Assembly: GCA_016748015.1 (NCBI GenBank)
Contig: JAAOMT010000761.1
Location: forward strand, 235,331-299,330
From: Geosiphon pyriformis uo1
Taxonomy: Eukaryota; Fungi; Glomeromycota
Direction of reading: 5' to 3'
Length of the DNA stretch: 64,000 nucleotides
In this document: in pieces, positions 2,570-61,385 of the stretch
Position numbering within the stretch: the stretch's first letter is position 1
Layout of the letters: each line of letters opens with the position of its first letter
Translations under genes and position numbers: made by a program
Notes under the pieces: generated by a model
Databases searched by the model: none
The model's input: the letters and a program-made list of their open reading frames with translations, nothing else
Told to the model about the DNA's origin: nothing

Positions 2570-5500
2570 AAATGTGGCTCATGCCTTTTTTACATGTGAC
2601 TGGACACTCATTCTAATCAAGACAGCACTATACATATACAGGATCTGTTAAAAAGATACCATCCAAGAAACCAAAGCCCAGACTAGTAAGGCAAAAACAC
2701 AAACTGAAACACAAATAAATATCCAATCTGAAACCAAATTCGTGGATAATACCAGTATCTCACAAACTTAACAAATTATTAATTGAAGACACAATAGATT
2801 CATCATGTGGTAAAAGATTGTGTTTCTTATAGAAGGCTCTTAACTTAGTAGCAGACAACTAGATATCAGATCTATGACTTTTAGTAAGATTATAGACCAA
2901 CCTGACAATCAAACTGCTGCCAGATTCTGAACCAAGACATGAAACAGCATCTGACACCCAGTTTTTTAGTACAAATCTCTTAGCTAATAACATATACAGA
3001 TCACTAGCAGACCCAGTCTTACTCAAAGATTGCATTACCCTACTTCCCACAGCAGAATTACCAGCAATCTTACACTACTTCACACCAATATTCGACAGTA
3101 TATTCAGTCTGGCAACTTTATCATGCTTACACAAAAACAAGTGATCAGAGTTTTTAACCACTCCACATCTAATGCACACTACACTAGGATATTTAGGATC
3201 ATACAATCTCTTTCTCATGGTGACCAGCAGACAATAATACAAAGACTTCATAAAGTAAGACCATAAAGCAGCAGAAAATAAGCTGGTATAACCAGAGCAA
3301 ATTCCACCATCAGGGTGCCAAACACTAAAAAACTTGAAAGAATTGACATCTTCAGCAAAACTAACATCAACAATGTTGGCACCAAATTTGGACTCCCAAT
3401 TGACAAAATTTACAGCTTCAAACAAATTCTTAACAAAATGACATGTGTTCCCAAAAACAGGCCTGTTTTCAACACTAAAAAAGCAATACAACATGCTTAA
3501 AGACAATACAAACTTAAACAAAGTTGTTGCATTCACAAAAAAATCCACATATTTGTTCTCAATAATGTCTGAATGTTCTTTGACTTTTTTCTATGTGACT
3601 GACAAATTCTTTTTTGAAATAGCTTGACAAATATGCTTTTTCTCAATCTAGCATTTGCGATGAAAATCAAGACCAAAACCACTGACATCAAACTTGCATA
3701 TATTCAGTAACACCTGACTGTTCATAAACAAGATGATTGTGCTAGAGTCAAGAACACACTTCAATGCTAGAGCAATGGCTTGCAACTCTACCAGCATAGA
3801 GGACAATAATCCAAGAACTTTCACACCAATACTCACATTGGCTTTTGGAAAATAAGCTGCAGCACCACTATAGACACCAATAGACCCCAAACTTTTGACA
3901 GAACTATCCATATAAACATCAATAGAGCCATGTTCAATAGCAAGCAACCGCTTAAAAACCAAACCAATATCACAAACAACATCAGCAGAAGCAGAATGGG
4001 ATGCCATAACCATGTTATTGCTCAAACCACCATTCTTGATAAAATCAGAAACAGAAACAAACTAGATAGAAATTAGACCTCTGAAGTCAAGCTTTTTCCA
4101 TCTGCAAAAAGTGTTTCAAGTAAAACACACACCATGACAATCCAACAGTTGGTTGGCAAAAATAAGACAATATTTCCTGAGAGAATTCCTCATACTCAGG
4201 TAGCTACACATGCCCAACATGTTCAGGATTGGCACTCCAGACCCAGCTCTAAAAACATTAGAAAGAATACCACCCAAAGAAGTATTGCATGAAGCAAGAG
4301 CATGCATAGCACCAGCTAAAAAACAATTCAAAAAACTAATAGGTAACGTAACTGGAAAATGGAGAGAATACTGGGACATCTAGCTTGCTGCCTATAAGTC
4401 TATTGCCCTGTGGTCAAAAAACCTGCCAAGAGTTCCACCTGTATTGCTAAAATTGACCAAATTGGCCATTAAACTTTCAGTAAGTACCTGTTTAAAAGAC
4501 TTTAAGCCATATAACTCAAGATGATGCAATGTCATACTAAGAAAGTCTCTAGGCAAATTTGCATTGAGCTTAAGTCCCCTTCTCAGTAACTTGTTCCATT
4601 TTTTGCAAACACTTTTAAATGTAAAGCTAAATTAAAGATGATAACAAACAATAGACTGAAAGACAGCAGAAACCAGATACAAAAATTGTTTTTTAGTGAT
4701 GATTTTCCTCAAAATCACATTCAAAAAAAATCTGACATCAGCATGGGCTTTGGTTAGACTTGGCTTGAACAAGCCATCAGTAAACAAAAAAATTCCCAAA
4801 TAATGATGAGATTTACTTTTCTTAACCACAGAAATCTTTGATTCATTAATGGATAATTTAGCTTTCAGAACACCTTAGTTGATAAGAATGGCAACAGTCT
4901 TACTAATATTTATTGAAATATTATTAATAGCAAAAAACTCACTAGTTATGTTTAAAATATTTTGTGTTGTTGTTAAGCAGTTTCTAATCCAAATTGTGTC
5001 ATCAACAAAGGCATTTACAGTGAAAAATATAGTACTGCCACCATTTAGGTCAGGCTTATCAGACTTAGTGTAGAATGTCAAGCACATTCTGTAGTCATAC
5101 AACTGTTTATGTTTTTTGACTTTACAGAGCAATAGGTTATAAAAGATTCACCACAGTAGTAGTAAAAACACCTCCTCTTGATCTAGTCCATCATGTACAA
5201 TATAACCATCAGACAGACCAAAGTCTGTCATAACCTGATTGAATCTTCTATTGTGTATGTCACCAAAGAAGCTTATAAAGCAGGGGCACATTTTAATCCT
5301 AACTAGACTGTTGCACAAATAGGTTCAACCAACAGAATTGTATGCTTTGCACATATCCTGAAGAACCAACCATAACTCCCTATTCTTCTTCAAAGCATCT
5401 TCAATAATCGAGCCAACAGCAAAAATAGAAGATTGTATGAAAGTGCTCTTCAATAACAAGAAGTTGTCACTACACAAAATGTCATATCTATTACAAGCCA

Positions 5501-6010
5501 AAAAAATTCTGTCTGAAAGAATTTTAGACAAGATCTTTTGTGCAGTCTCAACCAGTGCTATTGGCCTAGTGTTGATAAGGGTACCTTTCCAATTATATGA
5601 TTTAGGAATCATAGAAACCCAAGATTTCCTCCACTATATAGAAACACTACCAGATTTCAAGCACCTATTAAAAACATTCAGAAAACCATTGAGAACTAGA
5701 GAACCATTGTGCTTCCAGAGTTCATTGGGAATTCCAGAAAGCCCAGCAGCCTTATTATTAGGCAATTTTTTGACAATCACCAAAAGTTTATCCAGACTGA
5801 TATTACACATAACTCTTGAGAATGTATCATCTTCAATGTAATCCAAAGGAGTGTATTAATTAAGCCACCAATCTGAAAGGACACCAGAAACTAAGTGTTT
5901 TCTCATCCAACCTTCTATTATAGTATCAACTGAAGACTTGATAGCCTGAGGCTTCAAGATAAGCTTATTATCAACAATTAAATAATTGAAAACCACTTTT
6001 CTGAAGGGCA
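2570..6010 (-). mobile_element. Degenerate, 5'-truncated non-LTR (LINE) retrotransposon ORF2: reverse transcriptase, RNase H and C-terminal CCHC knuckle
   Basis: Minus-strand ORF fragments occur in the expected order. RT motifs: KAAGLSGIPNELWK, IPK...TRPIALVETAQKILSKIL, LVLQDMCKAYNSV, AFVDDTIWI (YADD-equivalent), INISKT. RNase H: IDVYMDSS...GAAAYF...VELQAIALAL...MNSQ. Knuckle: CIRCGVVKNSDHLFLC. Many stops and frameshifts. Confidence 0.9.
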
Positions 6011-8400
6011 AACAGTACTTTTGTTTTATTTTTGTTGATATGCTCTAACTGATCAATAAAAAAAGCTTGGTGGTTGGACATATTATTGTAAATAGCTGGA
6101 ATATATATAACAGATTGTATTAAGCATTAATATTTCATAATAATATTTTGTATTAATTCAACTACTTTGTCATTTAATTGGTAAATAATAACAAATTTTT
6201 ACTGAAAATATTGTGGAATGGTTTAATAAAGTAGAAACAATAATTGACCAATGTTAATTCTGATTATAAAAGTCTTTATGTATCTTTTTAGCTTATTTAG
6301 CTTACAAATAAACAAATTTTTTTGCAGAATCTGTTTTCTTTTCAAATACAAATATATAATATATTACTGTGGTAACATGTGCATAATATTTAAAGATATA
6401 AAAACAATGTCTATATATTTATATTAACTTTTTAGTTAGTTTTTTTACTAAATTACTTTCAGTTAAAAGACTTTCTTCCTCTCTTTTTATGAAACAAACA
6501 TCCAATACCAAATAGAAAAAGTCAGGTTATATTTACTCATTCATAATTCAATAATAAAGACTTAACAATAAGTACATCCCAAAATACAATAAATAAATTA
6601 TTGGTGATGTCAACAAATGGCAAAAGAGCAATATATATAATAAATTCTTTCCACACTTTTAGGAAAAAAATTTTTAAGCTTATAAAAATTTTATTCAAAT
6701 AATCCAAAGAAAGTTTTTTCTTAAAATGTCATTCATAAAGGGATGCATAAACTTTGATCAGATATATAGGTAGTTACTGAAGCCAACTAGATAAATTTAA
6801 CTTTTCTATAATGTAAAGTGGTTTTGCACTGAACATTTCCTTAATCTGAAAGTATAAATCAGAATCTGTGTTAGAAAAAAGCCAATTAAACATACAAATT
6901 CGAACATATGTGTTTCTTAATATACTTTCTAACTTACTATCAATGTGTTTTTTTGTTTGTTCAGTAGTAATGAAGAAATAAAAGGAGCAAAAGCATAAGT
7001 TAGTCAATGTATACAAGAAAAAAGTGTATGATGTGTTCAAAAGATGGTTGTATTATTTGTTTACCAATTATCTTACTCTTTACTTTTAAGTTTTTTTACC
7101 AAAAAAGCAATATTCAAAATATTTAATATTAAAAAATAAATATTTTATGATATTTCATATATTAATTATAATATAATTTACAAATTAACTTGTAATTTTT
7201 GCTTAAATTATCATAAAAAATAAAAAATTCTAAATTCTATGTTTCAATATTTGTTTTCCTTAATGGAATGAAGTTAAACTAATTTTAGTTATATTTATAT
7301 TGCCCAATTAAATTTACAAATTACAAATCCAAAGTCACATTTAATGTTGCATCTTGCAGATTAAATTTAGTTTTTATTAGTCTTTTTTTGGAATGTATAA
7401 ACATCACATGTACGTACCAAACTTAGGCATTGATCAACTATTTAAGTATTTTTATATTAAAAAAAAATTATTCCCAAGCAAAAATAAAACCTCTAAACTA
7501 TATGCCATGTATTATCAACTATTGTAAACTTTCTCTTTTTGCGATGCCTTTTGTCGCATATCTCCTTTTTTTATATTATGATTATTATTAATGAGTAAGG
7601 CCCAACCACTATCTACTACAATACAACAAAGAATATGCTCTAAAGTAAACGTGGATCTTTCATATTTGTTTTTATTATTATTTTTTATAGAATGGATTTA
7701 ATTTTAAAATAATAAACTTGACTGTATTATGGTCTCTAAATTAGATTAATAATTATTTGTTAATCTTTATAAAATTTTAAAAACAAGAAATAACTTTTTT
7801 GTCGATTGCCAAAACCCTATTTTTGTTTAGTATCTGCTTTTGAAACTAGACCGAAAATTTAATCTTCAAAGAACAATATTTTTTTGGTGGTGAGGAATAT
7901 CGTTGCGAATTTAAAATCTCTAATAAAAAAAATAAATTGTAAAGTCCAGACCATTTAGGAATACATGTATTACGCAAAAAAATACTTATATTTTCTTTCT
8001 ATGTATGACTACAATTTTTTTATGAATATTAAGTACATGTTTTGTTAGCTTTTTGGAGTCTCGAATTTCTATTTCTATCTTTCTGAATTTCTGTAATTTT
8101 ATCAATGTTGATCGAAAAAAAAATTAGAGATAAGTTAAAAAAACTTGTCCTCTGATAATTGTTTGAAAACGGGATGTCTTGTAAATGAAAATTCTAAAAT
8201 GAATGAGAATTCTTGGTTCCTAACTAACTATGATATTGCTAAGAGGCAATAATGATTATCATGATCACAATGTTTTTGGAACACAGAACGCAAGTTGGCT
8301 GTCTTTCAGAAAACATAATAAATAAGATATCAGGGTTTGCATCCTAATTCAAAAGAAAATTATTTTTGTACTTATATATCTCCATAAGAGTAAAGTAAGA

Positions 8401-9221
8401 ATGTATAAACTGCAGACTCTAGTTTTAATAGGGGCTCTTCTTGCTTTGAAGGTATACATTACTAAAAGCACATTAAAGAAGTGAAATTTTTTTTTTAGGA
8501 GTAATATTAATAATTCTTATCTTTTGAGCAGATTATTAAAGCACAAAATTTTCTATCAACTATCTCAACTATTCTTTCATCACAAAACTGGTATATCTGT
8601 AGTCCAACCAACACAATATGTAAGTAATTTAATTTTTTTTGATTTTAATGAATAGGTTTAATCTTCTCAACAAATTTTTAATGAAAAATTTTATTATTAG
8701 ACTATAACATAATCTTGTTAGATAGTAAACCACAAATCACTAATGATATTAGTAAAATAGACTCCGATTACCCAATACTTACACTTTTTGGAGCAATTTC
8801 AGGTTTTATCACATTTATAGCAAGTGAAACTGAAACCAAAAAGTATCTCGACCCAAATTTTACCAGTAATCTCACATATAAACTGAATTCATCATGTTAT
8901 CATATTATGTCAATAGTTCTTATTAAGGCTTGTAGCAAAAATGAAGACTTAATCAGACAATCTGCTATACTCTGTTTGGTAATTACTAATCCAATGAATC
9001 AGACGATTACTTTCAGGTTGGATTTAGAATTTAAACATCTTTCTAGTATTAATACTAAACCAAATACATCTACTACACAATCACCACTTAAATCAAGTAC
9101 TCCTACTTCAGCCTCTAATACACCAACTCAGACTGCATTCAGTGTTAAAATTTTAGTTATCAATTTAGTACTAATTGTGGCCAGTTTTTTGATTTCATAT
9201 TTTGCTGTTTACACTCTTTAA
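8401..9221 (+). CDS. Secreted, probably GPI-anchored Ser/Thr-stalk surface protein (~219 aa, 3 exons)
   Basis: Exons 8401-8451, 8532-8619 and 8701-9221 join in frame through GT-AG introns. N-terminal signal MYKLQTLVLIGALLALKIIKA-Q, a Cys-containing domain, an S/T/P-rich stalk and a hydrophobic C-terminus VKILVINLVLIVASFLISYFAVYTL. Confidence 0.8.
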
Positions 9222-10363
9222 ATTGGAGGAAAATTAGTGCTGGAACCTTGGACGTTGGAGTATTAGATATTACATGCTTTTTTTAATTAAATATTCTGTG
9301 ATAAAATTAATATCATTAAATTAAAAAAAATTTTAACTATCTGCATTTTTCAGTTTTATTATTATAAGCAATGAAAACTTGAAGTCTAATATTATTGAAT
9401 TAATAAATATTATAATTAAAATACATTCAAATTTGGAGTCATATTTGCATTAAAAAAATATATTAATTAATTGATTACCAATTATTCTAAATTTATTTCA
9501 AAACTTTTAATGTCAATTAATTAAAATTTTTTAATATTTTAAACAAAAAATTGTTTGTCATATTTTTTATTTTTAAAAATTGTCAATTATATTTAGAAAT
9601 TTTTGTTTTTTTTTAAAATCTTTATAAAAAAATATTTGAAATAAAAAAAATTAAAATCATCATAATACTGAATATCTATTTTATTATTTATATATTTTTT
9701 AAAAAAATATAGAAACTTATTAATAACCATAATTTGAAAATACTTTAAGAAAAAATAGGAATTGAATTGAAATAGATTTCTTTGAAATGCTTTTTTTGAG
9801 TGTAATCCAAACATTATTTACTTACATACAACATGTAAACATTCCTATAATAGATGTGACTCATACGCTTGTTAAAATGTGATTAACCTCCCGAGATTTA
9901 TGTGTAAACACATTTTGAATACATGTAATACGAGTTTATAATTTTGTTATGGTAAATAAAGATTTATCACAAAACAAATTAAATTTTAAATCAATATTAA
10001 TTTAAATTTTTAGCATAAAAATTCGTTTTTTTATCCGATTCTAAAGTTAAATTAATAACTAATAATTGTTATATATTCAAGAACTTAATAAATAGAATAA
10101 ATTATAAGATTAGTAAACACTAATATTTTATCATATTTTATCTTCACTAAAAATTAATCAAATTAAAAGCAGAAAACCATTTTTATTCCGAAATTTATTA
10201 ATATTTTTTCTTTTATTTAAAATTTATATGCTTCAAAATATTGATAAAATTAAATTTTATCCCTTTCAATATTCACGATACCACTGTAAATATATTTTCT
10301 AAACAAATTTTAAAAATTTCTGCATGACATATTACACTAAAATAAAAATCTTTTAGCCGATAA

Positions 10364-13059: not shown

Positions 13060-16000
13060 CTCAATTTCATTGGTAATTGCTGTGGAATTTTCAAGAATCG
13101 TGGTTAACTTTTCGGCCATATCAAATCGTTGCTTCGTATATCCTTCCAAGTAAGATGTTTAATATACTAATAGCACTTGAGGTTAAAGCGATATTTGGCA
13201 GAATTGTGTATGTAATACTTTTCTTCCAATAAAAGACCTGGAAAAATTATTTTTCAGCAGTTTTTTCTACTAGAGCTGAATCAATGATTTTTGGGGGCAG
13301 TTGTTTAAGTTTGCTTATTGAAGATGTGCCACAATTTATAATTCGGGTAAGGATACGCTCAACTTTTTCAAACCATTACTCGAATTTATTGTTATCTTTT
13401 TTTTTCTTTAAACTACCCAAACGTGATGATAAAACTGTCAAGACTTCAACGTCCGCACATGAAAGTATTGTAAAAAATGAAGCAACTTGAGGATATTTTC
13501 TAATTGTTTAAATAATAAATATATGATTAGAAGTGCCAATTTGGTATCATATAATATCTAAAAGTAGCAAACCCACCTAAACCAATCATTGAATTTATCT
13601 TCCCTAGAATTTTCGGGAGTATTATGAAAAGGACAAAACACATATTGAAATGTATTGACAATGATTAAGGCGATGACGCTAAAACCAAAATATTTTTTTA
13701 AATTTATGATTTACATTAGTGTGACATTAAATATCAAAAGAGCCAGCCCTACCTCGGTATGAATAATTCTTGAAAATCTTGGCCATTCTTAAAGAAATAT
13801 AAAATCTTGAACTATTAATATGATTTTGATGATCACAAAGTTTTTTGCCTAGAAAAAGATTCGGTTGTAGGATGTTGAATAGGGTATTATTCAATGTTGA
13901 TGAAACTGCTAACATACATTTTTGTTTCACCAAAGAGTAAAAATATATATAAAAACGAGACTGTTAAAAATATAGCTCCTATCACTAAGATCGCAATTTT
14001 ATAACGTGACCAAATATCATCTGAGAATAGAGGTTAAAGTAACTTTTAGATTTAAATATTAAGGAGCAAAAAGTAACTTGCGACCTTACCTGTAATTACA
14101 AAAGGGTATGTATTATCTAGCCAACTGGTATAATTTTCTCGAGAAAGTTTGTTCTAATCCTTATTAGCTAACATATCTTGAATATCTTCAATGATATTTG
14201 GGATATCTGGTTCTGATTTGCCAATGAGATATATCCGTAGGAGTATTTGGGAAGGGTTGGTATGTGGATCTCGTTGATAAACATCTCGAAATTTTATTCA
14301 TGATATCGGCTATTTGATTAGAAAGGCCTTGCATGATAGAAAACCCATGATCACTATAGACTTTCTTAAATTCAATTGTTCCATTTGCTGATAAACGTAA
14401 TAATCCTATCAAAGTAAATATTCAAAAAGACTTGGAACAATATAAATCAGAACTAAATAAAGAATACAAATGTTACTTTACCTGATCACAAATTGCTTTA
14501 TTTATTTTCTAAAAATGAAAAAAGAGTAATATGATAAACATGATATGTTAAGAGAAATATGTTTACCAGTTGTAAAGCGCCAGATTGTGGGTCCAATACC
14601 AATCAGCAGTTCATTATTTTTCAAGCATCGAACAAAATTTGTACCCACGACAACAGAGTAAGATTGACCAGGTCGATTGAAGGTGCTGTGGAATACATTA
14701 ATTGAAATGTTTGTAGAACCATCCGACGTATCTGGAATGGTTGGCGAGGTATGTTGACGCAACAATAATTTTCCGTCAATAGATTGATAGATTGTGATGT
14801 TACCAGTACCAGAAGAAACTTTTGAGTTATAGTTTATAGAAATTTGTGTTGTTCGTAAAGGAATTACTTGGTTTATCACTAGAAATGTTGATAAAATATT
14901 GGAATTCGAATATTTATCATCTAAGTTCTATTCAAAAAAGGGATTAGATAGATTTTTTGGTAAAAATAACAGACTCAATCTATAAAAAAGGCATACCAAA
15001 TTCGAGTAATTTTGGCAGTGGAATGCTTTTAGCTCCCAAATTTTGGTATCATTAGAAGAAAATTCAGCATACCAAATACTATTTTCAGATTTAAAATTGC
15101 TGATATGAATCCTTTTTTGGCTAATATTAACCGTTTTGATTTTACTTCCTGAAGTATTATACATGTCACTAAATCTTTGCTCATCATTTTGTCCAATCAT
15201 TATATAGTTACCACTAAAAACATTATAAGAAGCGAGCATTTATATTTTGAATTAATTGGAGTCTTCAGTTTCTGAAAAGATATAACTGCCCCTTCCAAAG
15301 TAAAACGAATGCTGTATATGAATGGTACAGTATAATTTAAAATGTGATAAAGCACCCATATTCTTAGCCATCAAGAGCTACGCGACAAGGTCCAATACGT
15401 AAGTTGTCCCATGATTTTAGAGTTTGGTAATAATTAAAGATTGGTCTGTTTCTTTTGCACCACTTTGAAAAAATATAGCATAAACAGTACAAGCAACTTC
15501 ATTGGTATAAAAAATCTTTTCACTTGTAACATTGGCAGCAATTGACTGAGACAATGAACTATTTGTGACAACAGCACAATCATATCTACCATCAAGCAAT
15601 TGAAAAGGGTAATACTGAACAAAAACTTCTTAAGAAAGAGGCATGTAAAAAATACCATCAGCAACTTTTCTAACTATACCATTGGCACTATTTAGAAAAA
15701 AAGTTCTTTAATTTAAATGTATAATTTTCATTAAAGATATGTATAAAATAAGATGCATTCTTACAGTGAAGAAAATGTAACTTATTGTATTATTTGGCCA
15801 TAAATAAGCATGCATAAATCCACCTTGAGGCAAAAGAATGATAGTTATTGTTTCATTCAAGGGATACCCACGACTGATAGAAAACTTACTAATATTAAAT
15901 GGTTAAGAATCTTGTATTTATCAAAGTTTAGAGAAAAAGAAAATAATTCATACCTCAATATTTCATCTGAATATAATAAAATCACCCCAGTTCATCATAA

Positions 16001-22941: not shown

Positions 22942-24455
22942 CTACTTGATCCATGGTGGTAAGTCACTAGACCGAATACCAATTTTAATGCCAAAATATG
23001 GTCCATTATTAAGCAAAAATTGGAAAGGCTTTGCTCCTCGAGAACATTCCTATAAAAGAAAAGCGATAAAAATGAACAATTAATCTTCTTTAAAGAGAAA
23101 AAAAGTTATATTTGATGAATCAAAAAATAAGCACAAACCTCGCTTTCATCTAGAAAATCCCCGTCTGAATAATATTTTCCTCCTCCATGGCATTGATAAA
23201 CAATTTCATCGTCAGCCAAAGCATCATTCATACATTCACAATTATCAGAAGCAATCCAATATTCCATAACAGGATGAAGATATTTCTCTTTTTGTGATAT
23301 AGATTCATAATTTGGTAGATTTACGACGATATCATTTTTGTAAGTAACTCGGATTTTTAGAAACATGGCTGTGTTCAGAGCTCGAGCAAATTGCCGATTG
23401 CCTATTCTTGGCTGTCCATAAGTAAACAGCTGTAGGGAAATGTCTTGTCTACTTTTAAGGAGATAAAAGTCCAAAGCAGCAAATGTTGCATACACTGCTA
23501 GTTCAAAATTATTGTAAAAAATTAATTTGAATTTTCAAAAAAAGCATTTTGAAATTAGGAATATAAAAACTTACCAGCACCCATGCCATGTCCCACAAAA
23601 GTTATTTCAGAGACAGCTGTCTCTGGGTTTTCTATCATTTTATCAAGGATATCGGAAAAACGAAAATCGGCTTTCTTGAATTGATGCCAAAATTTTTTGT
23701 TCACTTTTGCATTTTCATATAACGGGTAGTCAACCATTTTTCCAGAAAATGCGGTCATCCATTCAGTTGGTAATAAGAGTGAGCCACGGAAGTAGATAAC
23801 TAGTTCATTAGGACCCCCGATTACACTCGAAGCTAAATAAGGAAATATTATTTAGAATAAACTGAATATGTTGTTTGAATAAAAACTCGAAACTCAAAAA
23901 TTTTCATTTTTTTTTTGAGCAAATGATTATATATTAATATTTCACATATATATATATATATATACCGTACCTACCTACCTACCTACCTACCTACCTACCT
24001 ACCTACCTACCTACCTATCTACCTATCTACCTACCTATCTACCTACCTACCTACTTACTTACTTACTTACTTACTTACTTATTTAATTAATTTACTTACT
24101 TACTTGCTTACTTACCTAATACTTTATCTTCCAGGGAGTAAGCCAAGTTAGCATACCAGGCATATTTTTTCAAAAACTGTTTTCCTTTGTAAGGTACAAT
24201 TTCTTTTAAAGGAGGGATTACATTTAGTTCCACTCTTTTAAAAAAAGAATTTAAAGCTGAGCTCGTGTTGTTTTTTTCGAAAAATTGACCATTTTTTATG
24301 ATTGCAGAGGTTGAGATTTGTTGATTCGTATTATTTTGAATGATATCACTAAAGTTATAATATCTTGAAAAAAGATGTAAAAGAAAGTAGAAAATTGTGA
24401 ACAAAAAAATTAATGTGGTATCTAAACATTTTATTGAGTTACCCAATCTTTTCAT
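22942..24455 (-). CDS. Class 3 lipase (alpha/beta hydrolase) homolog, predicted catalytically inactive; 4 exons
   Basis: Exons 24455-24116, 23832-23575, 23494(or 23497)-23139 and 23049-22942. Motifs YAWYANLAY, LVIYFRGS, ITFVGHGMGAVYATFAALD, LFTYGQPRIGNRQFA, RVTYKNDIVVNLP, YLHPVMEYWI, NNGPYFG. N-terminal hydrophobic anchor/signal. Confidence 0.92.
23946..24112. repeat. Compound microsatellite (TA)n-(TACC)n-(TACT)n in lipase intron 1
   Basis: Directly visible tandem repeats. Confidence 0.95.
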
Positions 24456-28971: not shown

Positions 28972-29721
28972 TTTTATAATTTTCATAAATTCTTTTTGAT
29001 TTATATAATTGTTCTAAAAAAAAAAATTTTTTTTTTTTATTCTTTTATTTAATTCATTTTTAGCTTTCTACGATGTCGTGCAGTCTATGAACCATATCGA
29101 AGATATCGTTGGATACATTTCATAATTATTGCAATCCGTGCCATTCAATTATTAATTATAGTTATCGTAAATTTTTATGATATCGAAAAATGTGGTGGAT
29201 CTTTCCCGGGAACTGCCTGCGAGTCATATTACATAGTTTTCAAATTACGAGATGCTTTGGCACCTTTTTTTCGATTTTATTATCTCACCTCTGAATTAGT
29301 TTTTTACTTCAAATTATTTGGTACACTTAAAAAAATTCATTCTTCCGAATCACCAAATAATCAAGTTTTGCATTATCGCACTTATCAAACAATTTTATTC
29401 TCTCTCGATCTAACTATTTTAGTGGCAATGAGTGTTTATAGACTATTAGCCTTCGCACCAGTCACCCTACCAACCTATTATTATGCTGAATTATTTAGCT
29501 CCGCCTTAACTGTCTTTGTCATAACTGAATTCGGTCTTACAATTCCAGAACTTTTCAAATCTTCCACCGGTACAAATGGAAGCATAATTCCAACTTATAA
29601 CGCTCACATTTCAAGTTGGCAAAATCCAAATCGAGATTCGACTCCATTAAATTTAACAAATAAGAAAAAAACAACCCTTAGAAAAAATTTAAAAATTCCT
29701 CAAACACCACAAAATGTTCAC

Positions 29722-29757
<36 letters not shown>

Positions 29758-29919
29758 CCAGTAAAGCGACAAAGCTCCTTGGATAGAAATCATTCCTTAT
29801 TCGGCCATAATATTCGAATGACAAAACGTGATTTGATTTCAAGAGAACGTGGAAATTCCAAAGAAAATGATTTTATCAATCATGTTCCTTTGAGAATGTC
29901 AAAATTCTCGAACTTTTAA
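28586..29919 (+). CDS. Seven-transmembrane, GPCR-like membrane protein (~392 aa, 2 exons)
   Basis: Exons 28586-28908 and 29064-29919 join in frame (LYLA/FLRCRAVY). About seven hydrophobic segments, a Cys pair in the loop after segment 4 (KCGGSFPGTAC), and a long Ser/basic C-tail with poly-Ser encoded by (TCA)n. Confidence 0.75.
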
Positions 29920-32437: not shown

Positions 32438-33278
32438 CTAGTACCTTGCAGTAATTGACGGGGCCTTTCTAATAAACTTGCTTAATTCAACTTCTCTTAA
32501 AACAGCATTTACCACATCAGCTTTTGAAATTTTTACCCGTCCAGCAGCTTTATGTTTCTTCAATTTTTCTTTCAATAAATGTCGCTTGATTAAATTTTCA
32601 TTTTTTGGACCTTCACCCACTTTTATTATTGTCCAATCTAAATCCTCGGAATTTTCCACAATTGTTTTATCTCTTATTTGTTTGTCTTTATCTTTATTCG
32701 CAAATAATCTTGCAAAAAAACTATCGACTGTCGAGGTTTTATGAAATCGAACAACAATCAATCTTTTTACTCCAAGCTTGGACATGCTATCATTGATTAG
32801 ACGTTGAGTTAGGGAACATTCTAACCGACTCCATGATTTTCGTGGTGAAAGACAATTTATAACAGCGTCTTGACCTTCGATCACTTTATCGAGGTCGGAA
32901 AGAGAAAAGATGGAACCTAGGCAGACTACTAAATTTGGGTTTCGAAGTTGTTGTTGGGTGAAAGGAAGTTTATGGTCATTTTGAACGAGTATAGTTACTC
33001 GGTATGAAGCATCAAGAGCTTTTCGAACAACGCGACTTCCCAAACGGTTACTTGCTCCGAGCACTAGAAAAATATTATTAATAATAATTAGGATTAATTG
33101 TCAAATTTACTTCAAGATTCAAAATTTCTCCTTCATGAAAAACAGAAAGAAGCTCACCAAGAATATGTTGACCACGCGTGGAGCCCAGTGAAAATAATTC
33201 GTGATTTAAGGAGGAAATAGGATCGGAAGATTCCAATCCTTGAATCGGTAGTGACGAGCGACTAACGATATTAATCAT
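32438..33278 (-). CDS. Flavin reductase/biliverdin reductase B-like NAD(P)-binding protein, divergent paralog (~248 aa, 2 exons)
   Basis: Exons 33278-33158 and 33063-32438 give RGQHIL/VLGASNRLGSRVVRKAL, VIEGQDAVINCL, GVKRLIVV, LDWTII and KISKADV. Confidence 0.85.
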
Positions 33279-40593: not shown

Positions 40594-40632
<39 letters not shown>

Positions 40633-41291
40633 CTTCTTTTTTCATAGTTCTTGGAGCTACAGGCCGTCTTGGAAGCTTAGTTGTACAACAAGCCTTAGAA
40701 TCCTCGTATCATGTAACAATACTAGTACGAAATGATCGTAACCTTCCATTCACATCAAAGCATTTAAGAAATCCAAACTTAGTAACCTGGGTCGGTTCTC
40801 CTCTCTCGCGGGAAACACTAGATCAAGTAGTTGAGGGTAAAGATGCAGTCATAAACTGTATTGGTCCAAGTATATTTCGTGATCATGACATTTGTTCACG
40901 TGTGCAAAAAGTATTAAACGAAAGTATGTCGGCAAAAGGAGTTCGACGTTTGATTGCTATCACATCACAAGGATGCGGTGATAGTGGCCGTCGCGTAAAA
41001 CCTATTCAACACTTTTTTGGAAGATTATTCGCAGGAAAGATTATGGATGATAAAACGGTACAAGAAGAAATTATAATTAAAAGAGAAGATCTAAATTGGA
41101 CCATAATAAGACCTGGAATATTATGTAATGGGAAATTAACACGACGTTATCGAATAAATGAGTATTTAACCTGTATGAAAGTGAATCGAGCTGATGTAGC
41201 ATATTTTATTATGGCAGAACTGAGGACTAGTATGTGGTTAAAAAGAAAACCAACTATTAATGGTTACAAGAGATATATGTTCATGGGATGA
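40261..41291 (+). CDS. Flavin reductase/biliverdin reductase B-like NAD(P)H-binding oxidoreductase (~298 aa, 2 exons)
   Basis: Exons 40261-40513 and 40648-41291. RGKHIL/VLGATGRLG (GxxGxxG), VEGKDAVINCIG, GVRRLIAITSQG, DKTVQE, LNWTIIRPG, VNRADVA. The intron holds a (TGAA)/(TGAT)n microsatellite. Confidence 0.92.
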
Positions 41292-45065: not shown

Positions 45066-45767
45066 CTACCAGCCATTAAGATTACCGTTATTATTTCCAT
45101 TAAGATTACCAATATTTCCGTTTCCATTTGCATTACCGTTAAGACTTGAACCACCGGAATTAGCATTTCCATTGTTATTTCCGTTTCCACTTCCAATATT
45201 TCCATTGCCATTACCATTACCATTACCACCAACGAATGTGGGAACTGGTGCATATAGGGTAGTAGTGATGGTCTTTGTGGTACCAGGGAGCGTAGTAGTT
45301 ACGGTCTTTGTGGTACCTACTGAACCAACGGTCACGTAGCTAGTTACAGTTACCGTTCCGAGAGTAGTGGTGACAGTAGTGGTGATGACAGATGGAGTTG
45401 GAGTGATAGTGATAGTTTTGGTTGTGGTAGGTACTGGGGCTGTTGATGTGACTGTGCTTGTGGCTGCTGCTGGAGTAGAGGTAACAGTGACAGTTTTTAC
45501 TGCGCCTGGAATGACAGTAGTAGTGGTTGTGGTTGAAGTTGGTGGGACAGAAGTGACGGTTGATTTAACGGTCGAGGCGGGAGCGGTAGTAGTTGATATG
45601 ATTGGTACATAACCACCGTTAAAGTTTCCATTATTATTACCATTTCCGCTGCCGATATTTCCGTTACCATTACCATTGCCATTATTACTTGCACCACCAA
45701 ATATATCGACGGGGCTTGAAGAGACGAGAAGGATATTGAAAACAAGAGCAAGGATAGCTGAACGCAT
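45066..45767 (-). CDS. Secreted low-complexity protein: Gly/Asn repeats flanking a Thr/Val-rich core (233 aa, intronless)
   Basis: Signal peptide MRSAILALVFNILLVSS. NGNGNGNGNIGSGNGNNNGN-type unit three times. T/V/P-rich middle. GC content elevated over the flanks. Confidence 0.88.
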   Translation of the reverse strand: MRSAILALVFNILLVSSSPVDIFGGASNNGNGNGNGNIGSGNGNNNGNFNGGYVPIISTTTAPASTVKSTVTSVPPTSTTTTTTVIPGAVKTVTVTSTPAAATSTVTSTAPVPTTTKTITITPTPSVITTTVTTTLGTVTVTSYVTVGSVGTTKTVTTTLPGTTKTITTTLYAPVPTFVGGNGNGNGNGNIGSGNGNNNGNANSGGSSLNGNANGNGNIGNLNGNNNGNLNGW

Positions 45768-51512: not shown

Positions 51513-51644
51513 TTACATGATCGAGCATTGACCAGTGCCACTGCCATCGTCTGGGTCACCAGTTGGTCCTTTAATTGAGCCGTTTCCAGGGGCGATAATT
51601 GAGAGTGGATTGAATGAGGATTGATTGTTGGTTGTTGGTTGCAT
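51513..51644 (-). CDS. 43-aa CaaX (CSIM) peptide, candidate farnesylated pheromone precursor, copy 1
   Basis: Manual translation: MQPTTNNQSSFNPLSIIAPGNGSIKGPTGDPDDGSGTGQCSIM*. Start context AACAAAATG, upstream TATA box, and an identical protein in copy 2. Confidence 0.88.
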   Translation of the reverse strand: MQPTTNNQSSFNPLSIIAPGNGSIKGPTGDPDDGSGTGQCSIM

Positions 51645-51759
51645 TTTGTTTAAGTTATTTGATTTGATTTAATTTGATTTTGAGAATTCCGTATCTTTTT
51701 CTTTTCTTTAAGTTCTTTTGGTTGAATTGAATGAAAAGAAATTAGGAAGGCGCGATCAA

Positions 51760-51766
51760 TTTTATA
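51760..51766 (-). promoter_or_regulatory. TATA box of peptide gene copy 1
   Basis: TATAAAA on the minus strand ~120 bp upstream of the ATG; conserved in copy 2 at 55130-55136. Confidence 0.6.
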
Positions 51767-54619
51767 GAAAAATATATGATTAGAAACAATATTAACTGAA
51801 ACAGAATGTTAAAAAAGTCAAATTATTATTCCATTTAATCAGAAATCTGATAAACGCATTGTTAAGCTATACTAACAATATCCTAAAAACGGATCAGCTT
51901 TTAAAATTGATTATTTTAGTCGAAAAAGGCAAGATGTAGGTCATTGTTTTTTGCATTACAATATTATAGAACGAATGCATGAATTTACAATGCCTTAAAA
52001 AGCTTTTGAGTTATACTTGTACAAAAAATACTTGTTTATTAATGGACAATGCTAAAAACTCTAAATTTCGATTATTCCAGTTCCTAATTTTTAACTGTAT
52101 GTTAATGAGTATTACATGCGAGAAAATTTATGACCAGCATGCAAAATACTTTTGAATTCATAATTGTAAAAGGAACCTTTTTGGAATCTCTTCGGAAGTA
52201 AAATATGTTTAAAGATTTAGGTTTGCAATTCACTTAATGTGAAATAAAATAGTATTTTTGTTTCTTATTAAAAGTATCAATCTATAAACAAATGCTTTAA
52301 ATTCAAAATTGATTTGAATAGAAATGAAAATATTTTTTAAATTAAAATTAATTTATATTAGGTTCAGCTAAACGCCTGCTAATTTTATTCGTCTAATTTT
52401 AAAATAAATTATAAGAATGTTTACATTACATGACTCACTTTCTATTTCGTACTCTGAAAAATTTTTGAATGGGAAACTAACTATCAACTTTTACTATTGC
52501 AAATTGAAAGAGTTAATGTTCAACAATTATTCATCTCCATTCGAGCACCATCTCGTTTTCATTCTTCAATTCTTAAGTCAAAAATAGGAAGACGGGACAT
52601 TTTCAATTAGAACGAAAAATATTGATGTTTCCTGAGTTTCAAATTAGATATTGTTCTGCTAAAACTATAACTATTCTTTGAATTGTATAACCTGAAGCTT
52701 AGGTACTAATAAAAAATATCAAATTAAGATTTAGATAATTTATTCATTTTTAATATCAGTTTTATTATCTCATGAAGAGTTTTTCACTTTATCCATTTGT
52801 TTTCTTTAATATTTTTTGACAGTATTTTCTATATTCTGAAAATTTATTAATGATATTTTCTAATTAAATATTACTCTTTTCGTTAATAATCAAAGAATTC
52901 AGCATTCTTTATAAGTTTTTTTTTACCATTAATTAACATATTTTACTATTTAAACAATATTCTTATGATGAAAATATTGTTTATTTATGATTCAAATTTT
53001 ATTTAATATTTTTATGTGAAAATACTTTGGTTATTCCAAATTTTAATATTTATTATTATAAAGTCATCAATAAAATTTTAAACTTAGATTAAAATAAAAA
53101 TTTAAATTCTAAATTTTACATCAAAAGTTGATGCTTGATAGCTAAAAGCACAATAAAGAAAACATGAAAATACAAGTGCAATATAAATTTTTGCTCAGAG
53201 CAGTATTAAAAAGATAATCTTTGACAATAGCAATATTTCTTAGAAGTATTTTTTCAATTGTTAGTATAATAAACTTTAGTATTTTAACTTCTATTATTAA
53301 TTCATATTAAAAGTATAATTTAAAGGTGAAATTTATTTCAATTTTAAAAGAAATTTTTATAAAACTTATAACTTCAAATAGAGGATGGAATAAAATAATT
53401 TGAGTGTAGATAAACAGTTAATTTTAGTTTCAATGGATTTTGATCGGAGAAATATGGTTCAAGATTGGTTGATATATATTTATCGCAGGCTTTGGTTTCA
53501 GAATTTTCAAGGTACTTATCAGGTGAATAAATTAAATTTTTTTTATTGTAAATCGTTCAGCTTTTTATGCGAATTGTTTTCATTTCAAGATTTCTATGAT
53601 CAAATAATATCTGTTACTTTTTTCTCTTTGATAGTATTGTCAGCGTTATTTATTATTAAATTAAATTTCTTTGGAAACTATGAACCATAGAAACTATTGA
53701 GAATTAATTTAAACTATCTACCGATATTTCTAAATTTTCAAAAATGACTTTACATCTTGCAGTTGCAATGAAAAATAACCTGTTATTTTAAGATAACAAT
53801 TTAATAGAACTTTTTAATTTTCAATTGAGTCCAATATTCTTAATATCAAAGATTCTTCGTATCACAGCTATCATAATCAAAGACTATAAAATTCCATTAT
53901 CAGATGCACTAAAATAAAATTGCGAAAATTTGAAAGGTTATTACCTTCATAATCACTGCTAACAAAAGTATTTATAAACTTTTATTATATCTCTTCTTCT
54001 TATTAAAGTAGAATTTAACTAATAATAAAAGATATATTTTTTAATTTAATTTTGTCAGATTTTTAAGTCACTGAAATAATCAAGAATGAGAATTTTAATA
54101 GGAGTGACAATTCAATAGATCAACAGATTTAAGAAAAAACTTGATATTTTAATTTCTAATAATTGTTACAAACCCAAATTAATTTTGAATTTTCTTTTTT
54201 ATTATTAGCTCACATCAACTTAAATTTTCCAGCTTTAATACAAAAAGTAAAATATTAAACAATCAAGATAACCAAGATAATCAAACTATTTCTCATAACT
54301 AATTTCACTGATTTTTCACACAATTGAGTATTGAATTTTTACAGGGTTCTTATCAAAGGCTCTTGTATCAAACCTTTAAAAAGTTTAAAAACCGATCTGA
54401 ATTAGATTTAATAAATAACTTAATTCAGACGAAATGCTCGAATGTCTTGGGTTGTGTTAAGTAAGTAAAGATTGAACAGGTTCTTATTTGACTTTAAAGT
54501 ATCACTTTGCTATTAAGAGATATAGTTTTAAAGATCCAAATAGCTTTATTTTACTTGAGCAAAAAAACTTTTTATGATTCTTGATTTAAAGCCTATCATT
54601 ACCAAATTTACATATTAAG

Positions 54620-55211
54620 ATAAAACTAACAAATTATATTACTCTAATGCTAATAAACAATTAATATTAAATAATTGTGAAATAGAAATATGCCGTATCC
54701 TTTAGTTGCGAGTAAATTCTATCGACTTTTGCTTTATTGCTGATTAATAAGAGCTAGATATCTATGTAAAGAGTCCAAGTTTGCATTATATTAACTTGAA
54801 GTATGTAAGCCAGAAGTGCCGACGATAATTTTCACACAATTTACTGGGATGGTTCGAAAAAGAGAACTTGCAATATGAATACTCTGCAACTTTTACATGA
54901 TCGAGCATTGACCAGTGCCACTACCATCATCTGGGTCACCAGTTGGTCCTTTAATTGAGCCGTTGCCAGGAGCGATGATTGAGAGTGGATTGAAAGAGGA
55001 TTGATTGTTGGTTGTTGGTTGCATTTTGTTTAAGTTATTTGATTTGATTTAATTTGAATTTGAGAATTCAATTTCTTTTCCTTTTTTTTGGTTGGATTGA
55101 ATGAAAAAAAGTTGGGAAGGCACGATCTATTTTATAGAAAAAGATATGATTAGAAACAATATTAACTGAAGCAGAATGTTAAAAAAGTCAAATTATTATT
55201 CCATTTAATCA
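54620..55211. repeat. Direct duplication of ~51250-51841 (peptide gene with its UTRs and promoter)
   Basis: Near-identical blocks such as GCATTATATTAACTTGAAGTATGTAAGCC and AAAAAAGTCAAATTATTATTCCATTTAATCA. The similarity runs into the N-gap. Confidence 0.92.
54893..55024 (-). CDS. 43-aa CaaX (CSIM) peptide, candidate farnesylated pheromone precursor, copy 2
   Basis: Same peptide as copy 1, 3380 bp away, with six nucleotide differences that are all synonymous. Confidence 0.88.
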   Translation of the reverse strand: MQPTTNNQSSFNPLSIIAPGNGSIKGPTGDPDDGSGTGQCSIM

Positions 55212-55343
55212 NNNNNNNNNNNNNNNNNNNNNNNNNNNNNNNNNNNNNNNNNNNNNNNNNNNNNNNNNNNNNNNNNNNNNNNNNNNNNNNNNNNNNNNNN
55301 NNNNNNNNNNNNNNNNNNNNNNNNNNNNNNNNNNNNNNNNNNN
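55212..55343. other. Assembly gap (N run)
   Basis: 132 N bases. Confidence 1.
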
Positions 55344-59800: not shown

Positions 59801-60238
59801 ATTTAATTACATCTAGCAATTCAACTTGTAGAAGTTAAAAATCCAAATTTTTGAATTTGACTCATTGAACTCAACTGTTCATTTTATTAATTCGAAGTAT
59901 CTCCTTGCACTTTATTAAATTAATTGTTTGGTATGTTTCACCAATAACAATACTTGATTGCCGATGCACAGGTACTGCAAATGATATATGTTTACCAATT
60001 ATTTCCGCCAAACGTCACACGGCAAATTTCCCAATATAGATCACTGGCAATCACATATCATGGGTTTTTGTCAGTTTTTGGGGTCTGATATCAATTTAGC
60101 GTATTAAATTAATCGAAACTTTATAATTGCCAATAATTTTTTATGTAAAAAATACCTCTCTTACTAAAACATTTCAGAAACCGTTTGAAGTATTCCTCTT
60201 TTAGGTTCATTTTTCAGTCAAGGATAAAAATAAGAAAC

Positions 60239-61385
60239 ATGCCAAATAAAAGGAAACCTAAGTCACATGTGAATCGAATACGGGAAAATTTTTTAAATGA
60301 ATATACTTTATCGAGAAGATCTCAAAAGTTTGTGGATGTCAAAGAAGTTCAAACACCCACCGTCGGATATAAAAGCTTCAATTGCCCAGAAAATATCCCT
60401 CTCGAAATTCTCACTAATATTTGTACATACCTGACGCCAAGTGATCTCAAGGGTCTAAGACTAGTATGCAAATTCTTTAATGAAGTTCTCGGATCACCGG
60501 TTTATTCAATTTCACAACAAATTTGGGAAAATTCGAGGCTTGCTTACTGCCCAGACCAACAGATGCCACCTCCTGAAGATATGTCTGAACAGGCATATGA
60601 AAACATTGTTCTCTATGAAAATGGATGTCAATTATGTGGCAACAAAGATGAAACTCCATCAATTTTCTGGGTGGTAAAAATACGTTGTTGCACAAAGTGT
60701 CTACAAAACAATATTTTGAGGTATACCTCTTTGCCTTTATGTGCCTTTGTCACCTTAAACTTGTATTAAGTTTCTCTAAATTTTTTTTCCAAGTAAGGAA
60801 CAGCTTCAAATAAAATGGCAAGTTCCAGATGAATTAATCGAAGTCATTGAACCGGTCACTCAACGTGATTTGTATGAGGATGGGCTTTCTTACTATTGGA
60901 AATCACAGGTTGCTCTAAAAATTAACCAATATATTCGACTTTTTCCCACGAAAAAAGAGACCTGGCTTCAACACGAAAAGACTCGTATTCACAAAATCAA
61001 GCAAGAAACTTTTCGACGAGAACAATTTGATGACCATCAAATTCAGCACAAAATAAATTCATTGAAAAGTCACCTGGAGTCATTGGTTACAGAATTTTTT
61101 AAATCGATTACTTCTCCTCAACCAAGGGGTCTTCGAAAACAAGCTGTACAAAGCTGTCCTTGTTATAAAAAGCTATTGTCCGATATCGAATCACTTCCAT
61201 TTATCCCGAAAGAGTGGGGGAGCTTTAAAGTTAAACTGGAACTCGAAATTAAAGAAAACCTCAAAAAACATTATAATTTCAATGGTTATACAAGTTCTAA
61301 TGATAGCACTATTGCTGATGATGAAGATCATCAAAGTCTTGACGACAGGTGTGCGAATGTCCTCCACTTAGGAGTTATCACTTGA
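60239..61385 (+). CDS. F-box domain protein (~357 aa, 2 exons)
   Basis: F-box IPLEILTNICTYLTPSDLKGLRLVCKFFNEVL, then IWENSR...MPPPEDMSE...GCQLCG...IRCCTKCL. Intron 60721-60793 (GT-AG) joins the two track ORFs in frame. Confidence 0.9.

Follow-up and report, generated by a model that had tools for sequence, protein, structure and literature searches.

A multicopy family of 43-residue CaaX peptide genes in Geosiphon pyriformis: candidate precursors of an a-factor-type lipopeptide signal

Pheromone signalling by farnesylated peptides is a kind of system known from Dikarya. In basidiomycetes, the pheromones are sensed by STE3-type receptors and their promoters are under HMG-box factors such as Prf1. 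Across Dikarya, HMG-box factors (Prf1, Ste11) drive pheromone genes via ACAAAG/AACAAT-type elements. The precursors themselves are poorly conserved even among yeasts. Textbook substrates of farnesyltransferase, -aaX protease and ICMT include the tetrapeptides that end prelamin A (CSIM) and K-Ras4B (CVIM). In arbuscular-mycorrhizal-type fungi, genes for meiosis, a MAT-like locus, an STE3 receptor and a Ste6 exporter are present, and to our knowledge neither a sexual stage nor a pheromone is known from them. Here, we analyze a gene family noticed in a stretch of 64,000 nucleotides of the Geosiphon pyriformis uo1 genome (assembly GCA_016748015.1, contig JAAOMT010000761.1, positions 235,331 to 299,330; hereafter, the window), in which two copies of a 43-residue peptide gene end in the CaaX box CSIM. 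An earlier note on this DNA had proposed that they are multicopy, a-factor-like pheromone precursors from an early-diverging fungus, in a lineage with no characterized peptide pheromone. The placement is right, as G. pyriformis belongs to the Archaeosporales, Glomeromycotina.

The statement about the lineage agrees with Halary et al. 2013 (PMC3834313), who described one STE3 and a STE6 orthologue in Rhizophagus, found "no peptide pheromone coding genes" and saw a need for new approaches. Pheromone genes were likewise not seen by Mateus et al. 2020, and no later report of a peptide pheromone gene in Glomeromycota or arbuscular mycorrhizal fungi was found in the literature searched. Within that literature, the presence of such a system in Glomeromycotina, in 33 copies, appears to be undescribed.

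Both window copies lie on the minus strand (Table 1). Translation of the window gives two ATG-initiated open reading frames (ORFs) for an identical 43-residue peptide, with CSIM immediately before the TAA stop codon. Six substitutions separate the two 132-nt coding sequences, all of them synonymous and at third positions, and ~92% identity is found across ~550 nt surrounding the ORFs. Gly, Pro, Ser, Thr, Asn and Asp are abundant in the peptide, which contains a single Cys. Its N-terminus (MQPTTNNQS) is hydrophilic, the longest hydrophobic run comprises 6 residues, and there is no hydrophobic N-terminal signal sequence, which bears out the claim that a signal peptide is absent.

A six-frame search of the whole Geosiphon assembly (128 Mb, ~25% G+C) returned 37-38 matches to the family. 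Of these, 33 are intact 43-codon ORFs, all of them (33/33) ending in CSIM-stop, so that the multicopy state suggested from the window was exceeded and chance occurrence is far out of the question. The protein is 100% identical in 24 of the 33 intact copies; that is, the product of copy A recurs in 23 other genomic copies with no residue differing. Intact copies are spread over 12 contigs, arrayed or single: 11 on C729, 5 on C578 (including the 2 in the window), 5 on C551, 3 on C622, 2 on C657 and one on each of seven further contigs. Furthermore, approximately 5 decayed copies were recovered (2 frameshifted, 1 degenerate and 2 fragments).

The intact copies comprise at least 27 distinct nucleotide sequences, and their variable sites are distributed over codon positions 3:2:1 as 31:12:9. 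Mean pairwise synonymous divergence (pS) is 0.39 family-wide and nonsynonymous divergence (pN) is 0.017, whereas the 24 protein-identical copies alone have a mean pS of 0.36 with a maximum of 0.73. Since the family-wide pN/pS is 0.044, the peptide ORF is a real coding gene under strong purifying selection. Gene conversion would also erase synonymous differences; therefore, the identity of the peptide is kept by selection and not by homogenization.

The boundaries of conservation delimit a very small gene. Inside an array, the duplicated unit measures 1-1.4 kb. Between arrays, similarity is confined to the region from approximately -245 nt through the stop codon and extends at most 35 nt beyond it, and an alignment of representatives revealed no conservation 3' of the stop between arrays or genera. 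Comparison of the arrays showed no terminal repeats or element-length conservation around the peptide genes; thus, a transposon is not indicated. The earlier note had considered that the ORF might be the terminal exon of some longer gene or a piece of a transposable element; neither was found, conservation being limited to the promoter and the ORF. The best explanation is that the peptide genes are single-exon micro-genes, each with its own TATA promoter.

In 32 of the 33 copies, TATAAA is located at -103 to -147 relative to the ATG, and in all these 32 the leader that follows the TATA box is free of any ATG ahead of the start codon. In 31/33 copies a second element, YATTGTTTC (YATTGTTY), precedes the TATA box by 25-47 nt; it also occurs in the Ambispora copies Al_4675 and Ag_8307 discussed below. 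Its 12-mer form TATTGTTTCTAA is absent from the 64-kb window except at the two peptide gene copies. Farther upstream, between -176 and -385, AACAATG is present in 28/33 copies, often twice per copy. These elements may be bound by HMG proteins, as their cores suggest, and they fit the HMG-box control of pheromone genes in Dikarya. A run of exactly 132 N (55212-55343), which may be an assembly gap, falls within the promoter of copy B.

Relatives were sought by exhaustive phmmer (1.84 billion representatives) and by word-indexed searches of proteins, while the Ambispora ORFs were read from DNA. The database proteins that contain the peptide are G. pyriformis hypothetical proteins only, and relatives were found solely in Ambispora leptoticha and A. 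gerdemannii, also Archaeosporales. In the former, one 18-kb contig holds all five copies, and in the latter the two copies are on separate contigs. All 7 Ambispora ORFs have 39-43 codons and a Cys at -4 from the stop, with 5 ending in CVIM, 1 in CIIW and 1 in CVIV. Across Geosiphon and Ambispora, the precursors are therefore 39-43 residues long and signal-less, sharing with the a-factor-type class the trait of a short precursor of less than about 100 residues. The earlier note had counted a loss of the terminal CaaX in homologs against its proposal, and the Cys at position -4 is retained in 40/40 intact ORFs, paralogues and Ambispora orthologues alike.

The residues M1, N6, Q8, S9, F11, N12, I17, N21, G26, P27, T28, D30, Q39, C40 and I42 are invariant in the alignment of the family (A2). 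The between-genus pN/pS is 0.2-0.3, with pS saturated, and the substitutions concentrate in two blocks, residues 14-19 and residues 32-38, of which the second adjoins the lipidatable Cys. Invariance within a species, together with species-specific residues near the Cys, would be expected of a ligand matched to one receptor. Beyond Archaeosporales, a metagenome candidate was rejected as a chance match of SKGPTGDPDDGK within an 820-residue protein, and a search of the ESM Atlas with the peptide gave no usable match.

The peptide genes of the two genera also share a type of neighbor. A family of membrane proteins of ~750 residues without a Pfam domain occupies at least 25 loci, with a paralogue in the window at 14502-14879 (minus strand). 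In Geosiphon, a peptide gene has one member as its immediate downstream neighbor (C704:508571-512023), and so does a peptide gene in A. leptoticha (L042:~4900-10253), the two neighbors being 30% identical. A homologue search with the 750-residue neighbor returned the query itself alone and offered no synteny route to other Glomeromycotina. Since the family has at least 25 loci, the shared neighborhood is weak evidence and was dropped.

Regarding perception and processing, the Geosiphon genome encodes one STE3-family gene (C642:334886-335808), whose two exons, searched and folded separately, together cover positions 1-292 of PF02076 (150 and 72 bits, with 148 + 75 bits also obtained). STE2 was not detected in the genome search, which does not prove its absence. 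Among the processing genes, ICMT/Ste14 (98 bits), the Ste24-specific N-domain (156 bits) and three prenyltransferase beta-subunit loci are present. The pathway that the earlier note had pointed to was recovered in part: STE3, Ste24, ICMT and prenyltransferase beta were found, and Rce1 was not.

Downstream of STE3, on its strand and 6-14 kb away, stands a tandem of at least three HMG-box genes (PF00505, E 5e-7 to 1e-5). A ferric reductase gene lies among them, within the STE3-HMG stretch C642:334886-349822 (L038, L046, L049). Contig C642 carries no copy of the peptide family, and the linkage of pheromone genes to STE3, a trait of the basidiomycete P/R locus, is not seen in Geosiphon. A complex prediction for the unmodified 43-residue precursor with STE3, the latter entered as two exon chains, scored 0.00 against a mark of 0.34, which speaks neither for binding nor against it. 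Elsewhere, a solitary homeodomain gene (C657:365669-365839; L051:8671-9936, minus strand) lies 21 kb from a peptide pair at C657:387080 and 389542. We rejected a link between the peptide genes and a MAT-like homeodomain locus, as the distance is close to that given by chance (roughly 0.05) and the homeodomain gene has no other of its kind beside it.

We consider it probable, if by a narrow measure, that the family encodes precursors of an a-factor-type farnesylated lipopeptide signal. Farnesyltransferase would lipidate Cys40 of the cytosolic precursor, Ste24 would then remove the last three residues and ICMT would methylate the new C-terminus. The N-terminal part would be trimmed, and a Ste6-type ABC transporter would export the lipopeptide, which would signal through the single STE3-family receptor. 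We infer transcription of the genes, each of these processing steps, export, receptor binding and a role in mating or self/non-self signalling. As pure conjecture, the prenylated and secreted product might have GSGTGQC as its mature end. A more tentative proposal, which we rate as possible and somewhat short of probable, is that Glomeromycotina use these peptides as their pheromones and that the single orphan STE3 is the cognate receptor. Overall, the earlier interpretation passes the available computational tests and is partly supported, with the peptide remaining a candidate.

It is important to consider the observations that weigh against a secreted lipopeptide signal. An Rce1-like gene was not detected in the search of the Geosiphon genome, a negative that does not prove absence; PMC2148179 describes Ste24 as able to carry out the -aaX cleavage of a-factor. 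There is no plausible CaaX ORF within 20 kb on either side of STE3. No Pfam family, PF08015 included, matches the peptide (hmmscan against Pfam-A, E up to 0.1). In two of the Ambispora copies the X residue is W or V, neither of which suits farnesyltransferase well. Within the species, constraint covers all 43 residues and not just a short C-terminal mature part, and 33 mostly identical copies are far above the numbers in known pheromone systems. No RNA run is listed, and public assemblies contain no exact-product record for the Geosiphon and Ambispora peptides. Finally, annotated proteins outside Archaeosporales yielded no family member, which is weak evidence of absence elsewhere because such tiny ORFs are rarely annotated.

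The likeness to S. cerevisiae Mfa1 deserves separate treatment. The earlier note had counted 11 ungapped identities, and this count was reproduced against an Mfa1 sequence of which the mature 12-mer alone was verified (PMC2134810). The ungapped alignment (MQP.T ... IKG ... DP) has identical residues at 11/33 positions, and under shuffling such a likeness has p ~5e-6 with a fixed offset and ~1e-4 with a free offset. The Cys residues of the two peptides are 7 positions out of register, and the Ambispora peptides need a one-residue gap to keep both Mfa1-matching blocks. Because the Cys is unaligned, a gap is needed in Ambispora and no Pfam family is shared, homology to Mfa1 is unproven. The resemblance is intriguing and may serve as a lead rather than as a sign of common descent.

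Among the alternatives, the one that survives best is a farnesylated micro-protein kept in the cell or on endomembranes, such as an abundant membrane-tethered regulatory or structural peptide that is not secreted. We regard it as unlikely, albeit deserving of attention. It would account for the strong within-species constraint on all 43 residues and for a very high copy number, suggestive of bulk demand, and it sits easily with peptide genes that are unlinked to STE3 and with an export step that is conjectural. Nevertheless, the peptide has no second membrane-targeting signal, neither a polybasic stretch nor a second Cys, and the acidic, Gly-rich stretch before its Cys would make a poor stable membrane anchor. 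In addition, the changes between species cluster beside the lipidatable Cys, as they would for a ligand. We know of no class of 40-residue intracellular CaaX proteins, which also counts against this alternative.

Much less probable is a ribosomally synthesized precursor of the MSDIN type, from which a prolyl oligopeptidase would excise LSIIAP between P13 and P19. Small, multicopy, signal-less genes are what such a pathway uses, the Pro-flanked hydrophobic hexapeptide is one of the two blocks that vary between species, and the Geosiphon genome has two prolyl oligopeptidase genes. MSDIN families have hypervariable cores, but 24 copies share LSIIAP without change and the others depart from it slightly. 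Moreover, excision of the hexapeptide leaves the Cys at -4 in 40/40 ORFs unexplained, and the prolyl oligopeptidase genes are not near the peptide arrays.

A shade less credible still is the notion that the ORF is the first exon of longer genes, as public gene models would have it. Annotated Geosiphon proteins of 50-792 residues begin with the peptide or with its first 34-42 residues, and in both Geosiphon and Ambispora the NCBI models leave the ORF by an intron, either before its end or shortly past it, and resume farther 3'. The junction of ATG with TAA or TGA creates a GT(A/G)A donor-like site (GTAA in the case of ATG-TAA). Yet the tails of the Geosiphon models are all different and unrelated, the Ambispora models likewise join the peptide start to differing tails, and the sequence after the stop is unconserved between arrays or genera. 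One model requires a 1.2-kb intron to reach a neighboring gene of a large unrelated family, and the in-frame stop three codons past the Cys is kept in 40/40 intact ORFs. Some public models fuse the peptide to lipase-like or 750-residue neighbor genes.

Judged from the sequence, these models (in NCBI, P0001-P0011, P0013, P0015, P0017, P0018, P0020, P0022 and P0023 are mis-spliced) look to be annotation artefacts in which the stop codon is skipped via a false GT donor at ATG|TAA. The gene caller probably used the donor-like site to escape a 43-codon gene. Public annotations of the Geosiphon and Ambispora genomes thus systematically mis-model the peptide family, splicing over its stop.

The idea that a repeat or transposable element carries along an ORF without function, to which high copy number and dispersal across 12 contigs could point, is almost certainly wrong, being already contradicted by the selection data (pN/pS 0.044 with synonymous divergence up to 0.73), by conservation limited to promoter and ORF without terminal repeats or element-length conservation, by orthologues in another genus and by the different look of the decayed copies, with their frameshifts.

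The window contains several other ORFs besides the peptide genes, whose features are listed in Table 1. At 5.7 kb from copy A is a 233-residue ORF (45066-45767, minus strand) with a signal peptide and long Thr-rich and Asn/Gly-repeat stretches; it resembles a mucin-like wall protein and has no Pfam match. At a distance of 21 kb from the peptide genes, the ORF at 29053-29919 (plus strand) has several hydrophobic segments, a Ser-rich tail and no Pfam match, and may belong to a membrane protein of the multi-pass kind. The ordinary neighbors comprise two NAD(P)H-binding (NmrA-like) ORFs (32438-33064, minus strand, and 40623-41291, plus strand), a class 3 lipase fragment (23106-23495, minus strand) and an F-box ORF (60185-60769, plus strand). 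Positions 1-2000 consist of degenerate short tandem repeats and are extremely AT-rich (9% G+C).

Table 1. Positions in the window of the two peptide gene copies and of their predicted promoter and leader features
Feature	Position	Strand	Remarks
Peptide gene copy A	51513..51644	-	43 codons + TAA; signal-less precursor, CaaX box CSIM at end
Predicted 5' leader, copy A	51645..51759	-	TATA-to-ATG; A-rich start context, no upstream ATG; transcription start presumed
TATA box CTATAAAA of copy A	51760..51767	-	~120 nt upstream of ATG
Promoter element TATTGTTTCTAA, copy A	51780..51791	-	Conserved; HMG-box-type core ATTGTT
AACAATG motif, copy A	51857..51863	-	HMG/Sox-type core
Second AACAATG motif, copy A	51942..51948	-	Motif count
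Peptide gene copy B	54893..55024	-	Protein same as copy A; 6 synonymous third-position differences
TATA box CTATAAAA of copy B	55130..55137	-	Motif position
Element TATTGTTTCTAA, copy B	55150..55161	-	Conserved; farther-upstream promoter interrupted by N run 55212-55343

If the peptides are indeed pheromones and the ligands of STE3, lipopeptide signalling through this receptor would predate Dikarya. It would also have been wired to HMG-box regulators, given the AACAAT-type elements of the peptide promoters and the HMG cluster beside STE3. The family would then open the cryptic cycle of sex or non-self recognition in Glomeromycotina to molecular study. A defined candidate ligand makes the pheromone question in this group testable at the bench, with peptide sequences in hand for three species that are species-specific near the lipidatable Cys and invariant within species.

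Compared with known systems, the likeness to prelamin A and K-Ras4B is confined to the identical tetrapeptides; these are otherwise large multidomain proteins, and the lipidation signal alone is held in common. The MSDIN genes of Amanita and Galerina resemble the Geosiphon genes in being tiny, signal-less, multicopy and missed by annotation, with a short Pro-flanked hydrophobic segment, but their cores are hypervariable and no CaaX is required, whereas in Geosiphon 24 copies have one and the same candidate core and every intact copy has the CaaX. The precursors of Pezizomycotina (Neurospora mfa-1, Magnaporthe MF1-1), which we take to be short, with CVVM/CVIM ends and an M-P-S-T-type N-terminus, differ in having ~21-26 residues and single-copy genes.

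The basidiomycete precursors (Ustilago Mfa, Coprinopsis/Schizophyllum Phb, Cryptococcus MF; PF08015) come closer, as they have a CaaX end, 35-60 residues and often multiple copies, and as the peptide promoters of Geosiphon have HMG-type elements and its HMG-box genes stand beside STE3. The Geosiphon copies differ from them in being unlinked to the receptor, near-identical instead of allelically diverse, and without a Pfam match. With respect to S. cerevisiae Mfa1/Mfa2, the differences are an X residue of Met instead of Ala, 33 copies instead of 2 and constraint on the entire precursor. On the other hand, Mfa1/Mfa2 share with the Geosiphon family signal-less CaaX precursors of 36-43 residues encoded by more than one gene copy, and their partners Ste24, Ste14/ICMT and the STE3 receptor are also encoded in Geosiphon.

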